64,000 nt of DNA from Pelomyxa schiedti. Its lineage: Eukaryota > Protista > Evosea. Below are positions 3-17,794 of the stretch, in pieces. The stretch spans positions 22,095-86,094 of the forward strand of contig JAHLWZ010000179.1 of NCBI GenBank assembly GCA_020536535.1, in the 5' to 3' direction. Below the pieces are notes generated by a model. It had not been told where the DNA came from. It did no database searches and saw only the letters and a program-made list of their open reading frames with translations. Positions within the stretch are counted from its first letter, which is position 1, and the number at the start of each line of letters is the position of its first letter. The translations under genes and the position numbers were made by a program.

Positions 3-1478
3 ATGTGTGCAACAAACTCATCGCGTTGGGACAGTAACACTCGTACAAGCAGCGCCGAACCGGGCGAAAAGTTGCCTGCGGTGTCTCACCAAATGCAATT
101 GCGGCCGCGTCGTGTACTCCCAATGTCTTTGAGAATGCAGGCTAAATATGACGTGAGTGATTCCGACACAGACGAACAGAGAAAGAGTAGCGACATACAA
201 AAGGAAGACGAGAAGGCAGTGGTGGACTCTGACAGTGGAGGTGAAGTTCTGGAGAAGAGTGATAAAATTAAGTTCACCTTTCGCAATGGGGGGAAAACGA
301 TGCGCCGCGGGATGAGCCCAACCAAAATTTCTGAGTTGCGTTCCGGGTATCTAACACCAGTAACTACACCCGTCAATTCCTCTCAGATAAAAGTACCTCT
401 CGACTCTGATGTTGAAGAAGTCCCTCTTCCACGCACAGTGAGACCCACCATCATTGACTTGGATGGTGAATCTAGTGACACCAGCACAAATTTATCTGAG
501 GAAAAACCGGAAAAACCACCAGCCTCTGCTTCACGCTCAACTTGGGTTCGTAATACTGGCAGCCCTTCGACATTGAGTGAAAGGGAACTACAAGTACTAA
601 GAGACGAAGAGTACGCCAAACAACTTGCACGCGAACAAGAAGAAGCAGCAGCATCTATTTTCATTCAAAGTATTGCCCACCACACACCGCCATTCGTGGA
701 AGACCGTTCTCACACTTCTTCTTCCCACACTTCCCCTTCTCATACGTCCCATTCACACATGTATCCTTCCAACACACCTCCTTCGCGCACTTCGCCTTCG
801 CACACGTCTCATTTCCACACTTCTCCCCACACCTCAACCAACACCTCAACCCACACCTCAACCCACACAACTTCCAGTCGTCCATACAGACCCCCCGTGG
901 ACACGAAATTTCACCACAGACCCACTGTTGAATTTCACCATAGTCCTAGCACAAGAAAGCCACTCGCACATTCTGTGCACGTACCAGCCGCACATTCTGT
1001 GCACGTACCACCAGCTGAAGCGTCATCGAAAAAATCACCTCGACTCCCAAGAAATATTTCCGACTTGCAACACAGGTTCCCTCTTCTTCGACAGTCTTAT
1101 TTGCTCTTAAAACCTCAAGAGAGCTATCAAGTGAGGACTATGAAACTCTCCTGAAGCTTGATGAAAAAATCCCTAACAGAAAAGGAGCCCGTAAAGATGA
1201 AATAGCCTCTCTGGAGCTCATCAAAGCACAGGTAGTTCCATCTGCATGTGGGTAACTAGCGTTGTGATTGTGCCTTCAGGCGGGTTCTGACACAGAATGT
1301 TCTATCTGCCTCGACAACATACAATCGGGACAAATGACCCGCGTTCTTCCATGTGAACATACCTTTCACCAGAAGGTACAACACTTATGTGCGAGTACTC
1401 GCAACTAACTCAATGCAGTGTATTGACAAATGGCTCATGCAAAACAGAACGTGTCCCGTTTGCAAGTCATCAATCTAA
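3..1478 (+). CDS. RING-H2 (C3H2C3) E3 ubiquitin ligase with long S/T/H/P-rich disordered N-terminus; multi-exon, 5' end may be incomplete
   Basis: Splicing intron 1376-1418 (GTACAA...CTAAC...GCAG) gives CSICLDNIQSGQMTRVLPCEHTFHQKCIDKWLMQNRTCPVCKSSI*, a canonical RING-H2; stop TAA at 1476-1478. Also contains a DEEYAKQL UIM-like stretch. Confidence 0.85.
966..1010 (+). repeat. In-frame 24-bp tandem duplication (AHSVHVPA x2) in the RING gene; 12-bp ACCTCAACCCAC-type repeats lie just upstream (~832-870)
   Basis: gcacattctgtgcacgtacca occurs at 966 and at 990. Confidence 0.85.
1376..1418 (+). other. Representative 43-nt spliceosomal intron with ACTAAC branch point
   Basis: GT...AG ends, ACTAAC at 1404-1409, and removal restores the RING-H2 motif. 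Confidence 0.9.
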
Positions 1479-1821
1479 AGATAAAGAAAAGTTTTTTTTG
1501 TGCCTTTCGTTGGAGATTTGGAATTGCAGTTGCAGATCGCCAACATGGACCGTCAGTACCGCCACACTTTTTTTTTTCTGTCCCCTGGTTTTTTCTCCTC
1601 GTGGTGATTGACGGTTAATGGCGTAGGTGGCGGGACAGCGACCCCAAGCGGCAACCAACAAATTGTGGGACAACCGACCAATGTCAACCCTCCCCCTTTG
1701 AGTGACAACAGAAACAAGCAGTTTGGTGCACCACACTCTCTTCTTTTTTTTTCTTTCCATTGTGTTTTGTTCTTCCCCTTTTTCTAAATCAAGCACAGAA
1801 GACAAAACAGGCAATCCGATC

Positions 1822-12080: not shown

Positions 12081-14705
12081 TCAGAAGTGGGATACAATAA
12101 ATACCCAGGAACCAGACAGAGGATTGTAGGACTTTAGGGTGGCTCCAAACTGTTGTGTGGATCTGGCTAGCTTCCTTGCATAGGAGTTGGAATGTGCTGG
12201 GTCACTTGGTAGGCATCCCTCAAGGGTGACTTCAGCCTCGCGGTTCAATCCAAAGCCAATGGGAGGTTTGCGAGAGCCGGGGTAGAGAGTAACTTTGTGA
12301 GGCTCAAACACAACTGTTGCACATAAATCGAGTCCTGTGATGTCAATGTCTGGTCCACTGAATACGACGCGGCCACTACCCTTCTTTCCTATCTCAAAAG
12401 TGGAAAGGTGCTCGAGCTCGTCGGGTGTCATCCTATTCAGCTCATCAACAGGGGGAATAGTGTAGTACTCTGGGGATAGTGTGAACTTGTGCTGGAGGGG
12501 TTCATTTTCTTCTTCGTGGCTAGGTGAAAATGGTGGAGGGGAGTTAGGAATTAGAGTGGGCTTGATTGCTACTGGTGTAGAAGTAGGCTGTGACATATTG
12601 CTGGGTGTTGTGGTCTCTATGGATTTCATGGGGGTAGCTCTGGGGAGGGGAGAAGCTATAATCTGTTCACGGGTGCTGCTTTTTGGTATGATTGGAGAAA
12701 GCGTTGACAACATCTGCGGTGTCTGAGTGATTTGCTGATTTGTGGATGTACTCAGGTCGAATCGAACTGTCTTTTCGGGAGTTGACTTTTGGGAAAGTGG
12801 AGTTGCAGGTAATTTAGAGAATGTCTCCTTTCCAAGACTTGCTGTTGTGTTACTTTTCATTTGGGAAGGAGTCCGATATGGGTTCTGTGACGATGGTGGG
12901 ATTACTTGGCGTCGACTTCTTGTAGGAAGACGATACGGGCTTGGTGAAACTGGGACATCACTGAGAACACTGAAACGAGGGTGCACTACAACTGTGAAAA
13001 GGGTACAAGGGAGGAATCAATACCTTGAAGCGGGGAAGGTGCCAGGGTTGCATAAGAGTATTGTGTCTGTTGAAAGGGTTGATTTGTTTGTGACTTAGGA
13101 ATATTTGCAGCCAAATCCTTAAATCCCGGAATGGACCCATAAGGAGTGTTTGATGCAGTTGAAACACTAGGAGGGGCGTTGTGAAGCTGGGTGGGTGGTG
13201 CAGGCAGAGTGAGAGCTACGTTCGCATTTTGTTCTGGTTACCGTGAAAATACAAACAAGTATGGAAGGAAGATTTACCTTGTTGTGAGGCAGTGTTTATT
13301 GGAGTAGCGGAAAATTGGAACTGTGTTTGAGTTGGTTGTTGGAGTTGAGGTTGTATCTGAGTTTGTGGTTGGACCTGAAACTGGAACTGTGGTTGTGGTT
13401 GTGGTTGTGGTTGTGGTTGTGACTGTGGTTGCGGCTGCGGTTGTGTCTGCTGTAATTGTGGTTGAAACTGCAGCTGTGTCTGTGGTTGCGGCTGAAACTG
13501 CAGTTGTGGTGGTGGTTGCGCTGCCGGCAGTTGTGGTTGGAACTGGAACTGCTGTGGTTGAGTTTGAGGTGATTGCTGCGGAACCTGTTGCTGTGGCTGT
13601 GGCAAAAATGATATCTGTTGAGATGGGGTGGGGGCTTGCTGTGAAGGGGTAGGTGTAAAAGAGAATAAGCCTGGCTGAGCTTGTGTTTGTGGTGGCTGAG
13701 AAAACTGCGTGGAGGGCACTTGTGAAGGTGTGCTTGTGGTATTAGTCGAAAAGGAAAATGCGGTAGAAGGTGGAGGAAAAGTTGAAGATGTGGATGGGGT
13801 TATTTGAGGTGCTGTAGGTGTCTGTGCTGAGGGAGGAAAGGAAAAAGGTGTAGCTGGTGGCTGGGTAACTGGAGTCGAGGTAGGCCTGCAGTTGATCGGA
13901 CCGAAATAAAGTGAACTCGAAAAAAGGCATGTAGGAGGAGAAAATACATTGCTGAGCTTTTACAGTGGTCCCAACGGTGTTCTTCAAAACATTGTGACTT
14001 GTATGGCTCCATGGCAGTAAAGGACATTAGAAGGGTGTCAGGGTCTGCCCTTGTTGGCTCAAAGGGCTTCTTGACAGTTCTGAATGATAACAACAATAAG
14101 TAAATTACAAAAAACAAGAAGAAGAAAGAAAAGGAAAAAAGACATACGCTTGAGCAAGGGGACGACTGAAAGATTGCTGTTGGCTTTGTGATAGAGAGCT
14201 ACCAGTAGGTTGCTGGACACCAAACCCCTGGAATTGTGACAGCGTCGGCTGTGTCTGTTGTGGCTGTGCCTGCACATTTGCAAACTGAAACGGCATCCCT
14301 TGCTGCTGCTGCTGCTGCTGCATAGAAGTGGTACCAGTGGTTCCCCCCCCAAAAGGCGACGCCACCCCTCCGCCTCCCGTGAACGAGAACGCCTGCGGCT
14401 GCGCTTGTGGTTGTGCCTGTGGCTGCGTCGACGGGGCTGGTGTGCCAAAGGAGAAGGGGTTCCCGGGGGGGGGCAGTGGCGCCAGGCGGGGCGGCGGTGG
14501 CTACGGAGGGAGAGGGCGAGGGCAGGCCGAAGCTGAAGGGGCTGGCGGGCGGGGGTGCCATGGTCTGCGGGGGGGCCAGCGCCTGCGCCGCAGTAGGGGG
14601 GACGGTGGCGGGTCCTGGGGCGCCGAACGAGAACATGGGCGGGGGTGCAGTGCTGCTTGTGCTGGTGCTGGTGCTGGCAGTGGGTGTTCCAAATACAAAT
14701 GCCAT
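12081..14705 (-). CDS. NUP98: Nup98-like nucleoporin (FG/FSFG N-terminus, GLEBS, Q/P-rich linker, peptidase S59 autoproteolytic domain); +1 frameshift at G9 run 14465-14473
   Basis: MAFVFG, FSFG repeats; GLEBS-like SFTAMEPYKSQCFEEHRWDH; S59 domain YYTIPPVDEL...FEIGKKGSGRVVF...GFGLNREAEVTLEGC...YNPLSGSWVFIVSHF*. Confidence 0.9.
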
Positions 14706-14779
14706 TCGCGGGTCGCTCCCTGACCTCTTTAATGGTCTTTTGTTTCTGTTGTGTCTTTTTTTTTCAAGACTCAGGTTTT

Positions 14780-16459
14780 TTACAGGGAGAGGGTGAGGGC
14801 TTGTCCTTTGCGAGTGACAGCTACGAAAGCTGAGGTGTCGGTGCTAGGGAGGGTGAGGAAAACTGTGTCTAGTGTGAATCGCTTGTGACAGAGTGCGGCG
14901 CCAGTGGAAAGCTGGAAAACATTGAGGTACCCAGCCCTGTGTGCTAGTTTAGAGATATTGTCGTGGGAGAATGGTTACTTGGTGATAACAAATGCCATTT
15001 CTTGCTTGCATACCTTAGCCATAGGTCAAGGTGGGAAAAAGGAACGCAAAAGGAGAGCGTACCTGTACGCCAACAGGGAAATCGTAGGTATCAGAAGTGT
15101 ACTGGAACTCCAGCATCTTTCTAGGAAAGGGATTTGAAGGATCCCCAGGAACCAGGTCTAGGATGTAAAGAAAGCCATCACTGAACTTCCTTTGTGTAAA
15201 AAGAAACAGAACGCTTGGTACAGTCACTCCAGGAACTCTGTTAAAGAGACGAAAAATCAGATGTAGTAAAAGGGGAAAGACTTACTTGCACTCCGTAAAG
15301 CAGGCAGCATGAGCTTCGATAAATTGGCTAGCTCCTTTTGTGATAGAATGCAACTGTGAACAGCCAACGATTTGTGTTCCCTGTTGGGAGAAATTATGTG
15401 ATTTTTGTTTCTGAAAAGGAGGCTGAGTACCGAACTTTTAATCCCCACAAGAATTAACCAATCCCCCGAGGGATCCCGTCGGTAGTTTATTATTTGGGCA
15501 TCATCAAGGTTCGGTAACCTCTCAAACACCACTGTTGGGTGACTTCCTATCACCAGGTAAATGCTAGATTATAGCTCACCAAAGTTACTTTACACACTAT
15601 CTATCTGCCAGTGATAAACAGTCGTTGACGTGACAAGTGCCAGGCATTTATTTGAAATCCACTTCCAGAAAACGATGTGTCTAGGCATCTTATACTCTTT
15701 GATGAGAGTTACGTCATCCATGTCATACACTTGAAGTGTTCTGCCAGCTGATCCCGGGTTAAAAAAAAGATAGTTGCACACAGTGCATCCAAGGTGGTAG
15801 AGGGTAATAAGATTTGTTTTAGGTGTGCCTGTTTACGTGAGGAGTGCCTCTCAGGTGGTTCCGTGAGTAAAGGCTTATCATCTGGCATCATGCATCCTTT
15901 CTCACCATTGGAGAATCGGCCTGTGTGTACATTTGTTTGTGGAAGTTTGATATTTATCAATTCAGTCATGTTTGTATAAATTGTACCTGAAATTACAAGT
16001 AAGCTCCGATCCGGGGATACAATGGCTGCATTAGCAGTGGTAGAAATTTTTAGAACACCATCTCGAGCTGAAGGGGAAGTGGCGGAAGCTGTTGTGGTGT
16101 TTGTAGGAGGGGGTGCCGCTGTCTCCACATCAACAATAGTTACGGTGTTAGTGCTGGGTGCTTTTTCACAAATGCAAATGTGTTTGTCAGACTCCATAGT
16201 CAGAGCCGTGACAGCAAAATATTCAGGATTTATCCCTAAAGGCCCTAACTAGTGTTCAAACGTGAGACAACCTGAAGGGGAAAAAGGTGTGGATCACATT
16301 AATAAGTTCTTTGCACGTAACAGACACCGTAGCCCCACAACCGCGACTATTTGTAGTGACAGTTGTAGATCTCTCAACCGCCCCTGGCGAACTCCTCCTC
16401 GACCGCTCCGCTGCCCCCGGCGAACTCTTCCTCATTCGGTTTTTCTGGAAATCTGCCAT
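14780..16459 (-). CDS. Clathrin heavy chain N-terminal beta-propeller-only protein
   Basis: Exons give LGINPEYFAVTALTMESDKHICICE, ANAAIVSP, GRTLQVYDM, IVFWKWISNKCLALVTSTTVYHW, AQIINYRRDPSGDWLILVGI, PFPRK...YDFPVGVQ, VITKAGYL and VAVTRKGQALTLSL*; these are colinear with CHC residues ~1-330, and the stop TAA is at 14780-14782. Confidence 0.85.
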
Positions 16460-16652
16460 CTGCGTTTGATGGTTTTCGAACCACAACGATTGAATGTTGC
16501 ACGTGGAGGCTATTACACGGAATGCCTCACCACTCATTTACCCTGCGTGGTTCCCTTGAAAAAAGAGGGGGAAAAAAAGATGAAATTATGAAGGAAGGAA
16601 CTTCTCTTTGTACACCAAATTACCGTTACACTCCCACACAACCGGGGAGGCA

Positions 16653-17535
16653 CTACAATAGTCCTGAGTTTGCAGCCTGTACAAGGTGGTGCCCAAGTTC
16701 ATCAAAGAGTTGTTTAATGTTTTGGCCTGTCTTTGCACTGCATTCCATGAAAATTGGTGACTGTGCCCCGCTTTGGGCCAGTTGCCGAACATATTCCTGG
16801 GCAGTTGCTGTTGGTACAACACGGTGATCCGCCAAATCAAGTTTGTTTCCAGCTATGGCCAGAATGATATTTGGTTGTGCCCGCACTTTAAGTTCATCAA
16901 CCCATCGTTGCATAACTTCATAGGAATCCTAACACAAAGGTAAGTTCGATGGAACTAAACATTGAGAAATGCACACCGCACTGGTGATGTCGTACACTGG
17001 CCAAAATAAGTTAATTCGGAAAAGGATTGAAAGCTAAACATACCGACAATTGCGGCAGACGCTCCTCTAAAGTACATAGGTGTCAAAGAGCGGTACCTTT
17101 CCTGCCCAGCAGTGTCCCATATCTTAGTGACTGTGAGATAAATAAAAGAGTAACAATTAAAAAAAAAAGACCGAAAGGCAGTACCTCGAGCTTTACATCC
17201 CTATCATCAACTGGGACCCTGTGTACTTGAAACGACGCTCTTTGAAAAGTTAATTTGCAAGGAAAAAGAAAGGAAAAGCACTCTACCCAATAGTTGGTGT
17301 AGTTTTTTCGTAATCGTTTCGGCACAGTCTCTCCACAATACATGTCTTTCCAGTGTTGCTGTCGCCAACCAGAACAAGTTTAACTCCTTTTTCCAGAACC
17401 ACGGGTCGTTTCTCCCCGACACGCACACCTGAAGTCGTTGTTGGTTCATCATTATGGGATGAGTGAAGTACCCTGCGCGTGTTTGTCCTTGAGTTGCTGC
17501 TGTTTCTTCGCCTTGTTGCCGTTACAGAACCCCAT
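16653..17535 (-). CDS. Rab5-related small GTPase with predicted N-terminal MGxC acylation motif and no C-terminal Cys
   Basis: [56 protein letters not shown] and FMECSAKTG; 43-nt intron 17429-17471 joins MGFCNGNK... in frame; the open reading ends [10 protein letters not shown]. Confidence 0.85.
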
Positions 17536-17794
17536 CGCGATCTCTTGTTTATTTGGTTTTTTAATTAAGTTTTTCCTTTGTTAACGGTTGGGATATTTTG
17601 CTTGAATCTGATTCAGGTTCAGTTTTCATTACGCCCCGGGTTGCCATTCTGGACAATCTGACACCCGAACTTTGAAGTTCAGAGTTTGAGGAACGTTGAG
17701 AAGAAGGAAAGTCAATTCTTTGCAATGTACAGTTACAGTCCGGTACTGTGAAGTAAATGGCTTCGAAGCCTCGGAATTGATTGTGAGGGACGCC

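Follow-up and report, generated by a model that had tools for sequence, protein, structure and literature searches.

Does the short minus-strand gene that ends at position 14780 encode a clathrin terminal domain as an entire protein, and is that protein likely to have a task of its own? The terminal domain is the hub for adaptor recruitment of clathrin and has been studied with recombinant fragments and Pitstop inhibitors. To our knowledge, no organism has been described that encodes it as a separate, maintained protein. We analyzed the locus within the window (the whole 64-kb stretch of DNA from the anaerobic archamoeba Pelomyxa schiedti) and against the rest of the genome. We read it, with a probability of about 0.65, as a protein-coding, propeller-only clathrin paralogue that is a 5' partial duplicate, has no lattice role and is likely a soluble motif-binding monomer.

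Gene model and transcript evidence

The propeller gene consists of nine exons on the minus strand (16435..14780), with GT..AG at every intron. Translated from the ATG at 16435, this model gives exactly the public 403-aa protein KAH3765970.1 (Pelomyxa schiedti, GenBank title "clathrin heavy chain family protein"), which was found by an exhaustive HMMER search with exon 2 and is 100% identical. The gene is therefore already in GenBank under a generic name, yet it is undescribed in the genome paper on Pelomyxa schiedti, which does not mention clathrin; that paper used single-cell genome and transcriptome data, built gene models by Augustus, PASA and EVM, and reported 7.4 introns per gene. The features of the locus, in the direction of transcription, are as follows.

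16298..16435, minus strand: exon 1, coding for the Ser/Arg-rich extension followed by propeller strand 1 (...VSVTCKELIN); alternative start at 16459
16367..16426, minus strand: imperfect tandem duplication in exon 1, two 27-nt units (16426-16400 and 16393-16367), 33 nt apart
16249..16297, minus strand: intron 1, 49 nt, GT..AG, phase 0; position and phase equal to those of canonical intron 1
15987..16248, minus strand: exon 2, strands of blade 7/1 (GINPEYF...TMESDKHICICEK) plus a 16-aa Thr/Ser/Pro-rich insertion
15837..15920, minus strand: exon 2b, 84 nt, in frame, 28 aa, predicted to be disordered; RNA joints 15919>15986 and 15747>15837
15598..15747, minus strand: exon 3, 150 nt, from the clathrin-box strand GRTLQVYDMDDVTL... 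to FWKWI...VYHWQ; RNA joints
15431..15546, minus strand: exon 4, which holds the W-box QIINYR motif
15286..15380, minus strand: exon 5, 95 nt, with the arrestin-box residues K265 and Q269
15063..15237, minus strand: exon 6, blades 5-6
14979..15013, minus strand: exon 7, 35 nt; the 49-nt intron between it and exon 6 is not in the canonical gene
14780..14936, minus strand: exon 8, last blade, end ...VTRKGQALTLSL, stop codon TAA (14782-14780), overlapped by a GT (14783-14782)
14706..14779, minus strand: spacer, 74 nt, A-rich, from the TAA to the ATG of a Nup98-like gene

RNA evidence was drawn from contigs of two single-cell RNA runs of one sample, compared with positions 13800-17600, and splicing was seen in these contigs for seven of the eight introns. 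The long second intron of the earlier note turned out to be two introns flanking the 84-nt in-frame exon 2b, which had been missed there: RNA contigs resolve the 239-nt "intron 2" of an eight-exon model into introns 15986-15921 and 15836-15748, and exon 2b is also included in KAH3765970.1. The contigs agree to the base with introns 3 to 7 of that eight-exon model. Exon 2 is partly present in the RNA (one contig spans 15986-16111). In the two runs of this sample, no contig lay over exon 1 and intron 1 or over 14797-14350, and the nearest contig at the 3' end reaches 14798, 16 nt before the stop codon. The 89-nt intron 15748-15836 is retained in one contig of run X1, in which the upstream 66-nt intron is spliced and one T is missing from the T-run at 15761, and is spliced out in a contig of run X2; the retained form is probably unfinished pre-mRNA, since retention would end the frame early.

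In-frame ATGs stand at 16537, 16459 and 16435, with no stop in between. The public annotation starts at 16435 and not at 16459, where the gene had been placed before, and use of the ATG at 16537 would make the N-terminal tail up to 34 aa longer than annotated. Measured against canonical exon 1, the N-terminal extension comes to 28-36 aa; its length had thus been overstated at ~40 aa, while the SSPGAAERS/SSPGAVERS duplication described within it is real, its two units being identical at 20 of 27 nt and each preceded by basic residues (RK/RR). TRF gave no score for this duplication.

Upstream of the propeller gene lies a small GTPase gene (16625-17544; G1 GDSNTGKT, G3 DTAGQE), five introns of which (43-62 nt) are confirmed by RNA. 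Its RNA contigs are far deeper than those of the propeller gene and end 24-28 nt past its stop, about 90-190 nt before the possible propeller ATGs. A Rab-propeller fusion was rejected, since the Rab frame is closed by a stop of its own and the RNA contigs of that gene end at ~16625.

Architecture and origin by partial DNA duplication

Compared singly with the PDB, the exons matched solely clathrin heavy chain terminal domains, and the matches were collinear (exon 2 with residues 17-83, exon 3 with 85-132, exon 6 with 211-265 and exon 8 with 280-327). The whole protein likewise matched clathrin terminal domains only (phmmer, E = 1.4e-60). Residue 401 of KAH3765970.1 aligns with human residue 327, and its end (residue 403, ...RKGQALTLSL) lies opposite ~329, in the last propeller strand. 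The initial observation that the exons track the clathrin heavy chain up to the end of the propeller and then stop is borne out by these collinear matches and by the position of the TAA.

An AF2 model of the 403-aa protein, with 37 aligned sequences as input, shows about 28 strands and a core with pLDDT of 85-95 from residue 160 onward. Values are below 50 for residues 1-34 (the N-terminal tail) and 138-159 (exon 2b), and the Thr/Ser/Pro-rich loop at residues 94-107 forms a third low-confidence stretch. In a Foldseek search with this model, clathrin terminal domains came out on top (best 5m5r, TM 0.84, rmsd 2.1 A), and generic WD40 propellers reached TM 0.5-0.6. The Pfam profile Clathrin_propel (PF01394) gave 15.4 bits for the whole protein, under its gathering threshold of 21.3 bits; single exons had no Pfam match, and a six-frame PF01394 scan of the genome did not pick up the propeller gene; homology is established by the other comparisons.

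The remaining parts of a clathrin heavy chain are absent. The propeller gene has no CHCR leg repeats (PF00637) and no alpha-zigzag linker (Clathrin-link PF09268, Clathrin_H_link PF13838), for which clear genome-wide matches were found solely on contig C416, and the 403-aa product is devoid of the trimerisation and light-chain-binding region. Whole-genome six-frame scans gave no PF00637, PF09268 or PF13838 match on contig C179, which carries the gene, and tblastn of all canonical clathrin pieces against the 64-kb window found nothing outside 16236-14786. These results support an architecture that comprises one complete clathrin-type propeller of seven blades, with no other part. Because the protein has no linker, legs, light-chain-binding or trimerisation region, it cannot form triskelia or enter a lattice. 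As a rule, clathrin terminal domains that were crystallised extend into the first linker helices, which counts somewhat against the propeller-only reading.

A canonical clathrin heavy chain gene was found on C416, with propeller, linker, H-link and many CHCR matches (at least seven repeats), and its large ORFs align with human residues 785-1359 (E = 2e-200) and 1533-1625 (trimerisation region). The separate full-length heavy chain for which the earlier note had called is therefore present, from the propeller through the trimerisation region. We modelled the canonical N-terminal exons for an intron comparison and found six intron positions and phases common to the two genes, together with identical lengths of exons 3 and 5 (150 and 95 nt). 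The intron between exons 6 and 7 occurs in the propeller gene only, the 16-aa insertion of exon 2 is missing from the canonical gene, and exon 2b is placed inside the ancestral second intron, the counterpart region of the canonical gene being one 42-nt intron. The canonical last-blade exon continues into the linker without an intron, and the propeller copy ends within this ancestral exon, at the propeller/linker boundary. The six intron positions and phases common to both show that the propeller gene originated at the DNA level, by a partial duplication that copied the 5' portion of the canonical gene; a retroposed origin was rejected, as introns are common with the parent gene. After the duplication, the copy gained one intron, one in-frame exon, the loop insertion and the N-terminal Ser/Arg-rich tail.

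Other clathrin-derived pieces were also detected in the genome. An intronless 656-aa ORF at C806:51175-53145 (plus strand) is clathrin-heavy-chain-like, more diverged than the 403-aa protein, and combines a propeller, a disordered stretch, a linker and one CHCR. In the PDB this ORF matches clathrin (E = 5e-64); its identity to the canonical copy is 31%, and it stops near human residue 630, the 2.8 kb downstream being free of other clathrin-like sequence. The 1.6-kb contig C2390 is filled by a version of it with 92% identity (79-1581, minus strand). At C1450:2517-3176 (minus strand), a 219-aa ORF resembles leg residues 862-1070 (E = 3e-31, PDB; 33% identical to canonical) and stands between a Sel1-repeat ORF and, on the opposite strand, a 490-aa ORF; this may be a clathrin fragment of a third type, or else a relic. 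Exact look-up of the ORFs on these three contigs returned no match. Judged by these ORFs, partial duplication of the gene for clathrin heavy chain seems to be recurrent in Pelomyxa.

Constraint, groove residues and alternative explanations

The propeller copy and the canonical domain are 47.6% identical over 317 aligned pairs, with pN of 0.35 and a saturated pS of 0.77, and they differ at codon positions 1, 2 and 3 by 0.39, 0.30 and 0.64, respectively. In neutral simulations to equal divergence, the frame was kept open in 0 of 5000 cases (mean of 11 stops). All 403 codons of the actual gene are open, which upholds the original view of a frame intact over several introns and of no decayed pseudogene. 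Relative to 15 plant outgroups, about 55 changes are unique to the copy and about 23 to the canonical domain (p about 1e-4), and the copy evolves about 2.4 times faster. The ~23 canonical-specific changes point to a duplication that is not very recent. Taken at the codon level, the comparison indicates clear coding constraint on the copy despite its faster evolution.

No orthologue of the propeller-only gene was found in the databases searched, which included some EukProt entries and no dedicated protist genome set. Besides KAH3765970.1, the exhaustive search returned only weak matches (E = 1e-6 or worse), comprising canonical N-terminal fragments and two low-complexity matches. A word-based protein search with KAH3765970.1 returned the protein itself and one canonical fragment, and the same kind of search with residues 160-262 returned the protein itself only. 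A profile search gave 443 canonical fragments, mostly from plants among the 120 matches listed, and in JGI metagenomes 40 patterns matched, with no relative of the propeller copy. For all of the retrieved homologues (128/128), the closer match was the canonical Pelomyxa domain and not the copy. The literature was searched for Pelomyxa clathrin or propeller-only clathrin, and nothing was found.

We further compared the peptide-binding grooves, using human numbering from the phmmer alignment, 25-28 canonical sequences as reference, and the roles of groove residues given in PMC11543927. The anchoring glutamines of three grooves are present in the copy (Q167, Q229 and Q269, equal to human Q89, Q152 and Q192), and E11 and R297 of the Royle box are kept, as are I154, I170 and T87. 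The substitutions R188K, N296K and I93M are common to the copy and canonical Pelomyxa. Changes found in this copy alone are K96V, K98L, F27V and F91Y, at positions nearly invariant in the 25-28 canonical sequences. In the clathrin box, V174 and L176 of the copy thus replace K96 and K98, and on the W-box floor V59 replaces F27; the three residues are R, K and F in canonical Pelomyxa and K, K and F in the 25-28 other sequences. Two disordered insertions, the loop of 16 aa and exon 2b of 28 aa, flank the strand of the clathrin-box groove (blade 1-2). Conservation of this groove, a point raised in the earlier note, is accordingly partial: the anchoring glutamine and hydrophobic residues are retained, and K96 and K98, together with W-box F27, are lost. 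With Val/Leu in place of the basic clamp K96/K98, and Val in place of W-box F27, the copy has probably changed in specificity; we infer that peptide binding itself is retained.

The same substitutions bear on the possibility that the gene is a functionless transcribed leftover of the partial duplication, under relaxed constraint and one of several clathrin heavy chain fragments. The 2.4-fold faster rate and the loss of the otherwise nearly invariant K96, K98 and F27 also fit relaxed constraint, and the gene has thin RNA contigs only and no orthologue in the databases searched, while the truncated clathrin-like pieces on C806, C2390 and C1450 suggest frequent partial duplications. Such a leftover is nevertheless hard to reconcile with a 403-codon frame, 16 splice sites and a new in-frame exon that are all intact while synonymous sites are saturated, with the failure of every neutral simulation to stay open, with a codon-position pattern of constrained coding sequence, or with the confident AF2 prediction of the propeller core. 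We therefore regard it as unlikely and prefer a protein-coding propeller-only paralogue.

A less probable alternative concerns the 3' end of the gene. The downstream gene has its ATG at 14705 on the minus strand, opens an FG-repeat ORF (MAFVFGTP...) and carries a Nup98 autopeptidase domain (12084-12473, minus strand), and is hence Nup98-like; the distance of ~75 bp from the propeller stop reported at first proved to be 74 nt. The propeller could be the N-terminal part of a fusion with this neighbour if the GT at 14783 served as the donor of an intron of 38-68 nt that joined the frames. Four GT..AG options of 38-68 nt lead in frame into MAFVFGTP..., confirmed introns here measure 42-89 nt with one reaching 47% A, and no RNA contig of the two runs from one sample covers the junction region. 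In composition (53-60% A, 11-13% T), however, the candidate introns fall outside what the 13 RNA-confirmed introns span, though not by a wide margin, and the 38-nt option is shorter than every confirmed intron. Nup98-type proteins start with an FG motif right after the ATG, and this Nup98 ORF has an FG motif directly behind its own ATG. Moreover, no intron interrupts the corresponding position of the parent gene, and the public EVM/PASA transcript-informed model ends at the same TAA. A fusion is thus quite improbable, and the spacer at 14706-14779 presumably holds the 3' UTR of the propeller gene and the promoter of its neighbour.

Within the Nup98-like gene, a C9 run (14473-14465, minus strand) shifts the FG-repeat frame from ...GATAPP to ...PPPGNPFSFGTPAPS; this break is probably a homopolymer length error of the single-cell assembly, or else a real frameshift. 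Two other regions (C646:1035-1496 and C825:41774-42166) give a match to the Nup98 autopeptidase domain that equals or exceeds that of the window locus, and the nucleoporin is therefore present in at least three copies or alleles. That the propeller gene adjoins Nup98 is probably a coincidence.

Finally, we give almost no credence to an assembly artefact, namely a chimeric join close to 14780 by which a longer clathrin-like gene lost its remainder. In its favour, SPAdes assembled the genome from single-cell data and RNA reads served for scaffolding, the C9 run that breaks the Nup98 frame would reflect local sequence errors, and C1450 holds an orphan leg-like fragment. Against it, chance would hardly place a stop exactly at the domain boundary with a gene start 74 nt on, the C1450 fragment has only 33% identity with the canonical leg and lies between unrelated ORFs, and 99% of the sampled 31-mers of 14100-16700 occur in run X3, which may be the assembly source and not independent.

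Putative role and comparison with known systems

With the clathrin fold kept, along with the glutamines that anchor peptides in the clathrin, W and arrestin boxes, the propeller-only paralogue most likely still binds short linear motifs of adaptor or accessory proteins as a soluble monomer. The free propeller may act as a competitor or buffer of the canonical terminal domain, or may recruit motifs to a non-coat task, so that a role as decoy, regulator or scaffold can reasonably be inferred. A more far-reaching proposal, which we put forward tentatively, is that Pelomyxa keeps a selected soluble terminal domain that titrates or redirects adaptor motifs with retuned specificity, as an endogenous natural competitor of the adaptor hub of the coat, and that this protein and the 656-aa propeller-plus-ankle protein of C806/C2390 belong to a small group of truncated clathrin derivatives in the lineage, which together would use clathrin modules outside the lattice. 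If functional, the copy would offer a natural experiment on a free terminal domain in a cell, show which groove residues may change with the fold kept, and provide an example of partial gene duplication yielding new trafficking regulators.

The closest structural counterpart is the terminal domain of human clathrin (CLTC residues 1-330; PDB 1BPO, 1C9I and 5M5R), which is the same seven-bladed propeller (TM 0.84). In described clathrins this domain is the tip of a chain of ~1675 aa, whereas in the Pelomyxa copy it is the entire protein. The copy further differs from the CLTC terminal domain in the replacement of K96, K98 and F27, in the insertions of 16 and 28 aa, and in a basic Ser-rich tail of 28-36 aa. 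The canonical C416 gene continues in the same exon to the linker and on to at least seven CHCR and the trimerisation region, whereas the copy stops at the propeller/linker boundary and carries one additional intron and one additional exon.

Short clathrin entries also occur in plants, including Daucus carota isoforms X6/X9 and hypothetical proteins of Ensete, Vitis and Triticum (356-403 aa), which carry Clathrin_propel only, with or without Clathrin-link. They are near-canonical, and each of them aligns with a higher score to the canonical Pelomyxa domain than to the copy. They look like partial models or isoforms, and, as far as tested, none of them appears to be a diverged, separately maintained gene.

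Vertebrate CHC22 (CLTCL1) is likewise the product of a clathrin heavy chain duplication and has diverged in its adaptor specificity. It has the full length and assembles into triskelia, which the Pelomyxa propeller copy cannot form. Single propellers that work without an attached alpha-solenoid are represented in the protocoatomer world by the single beta-propeller coat and pore proteins Sec13 and Seh1, which are WD40-type propellers completed by a strand of their partner.
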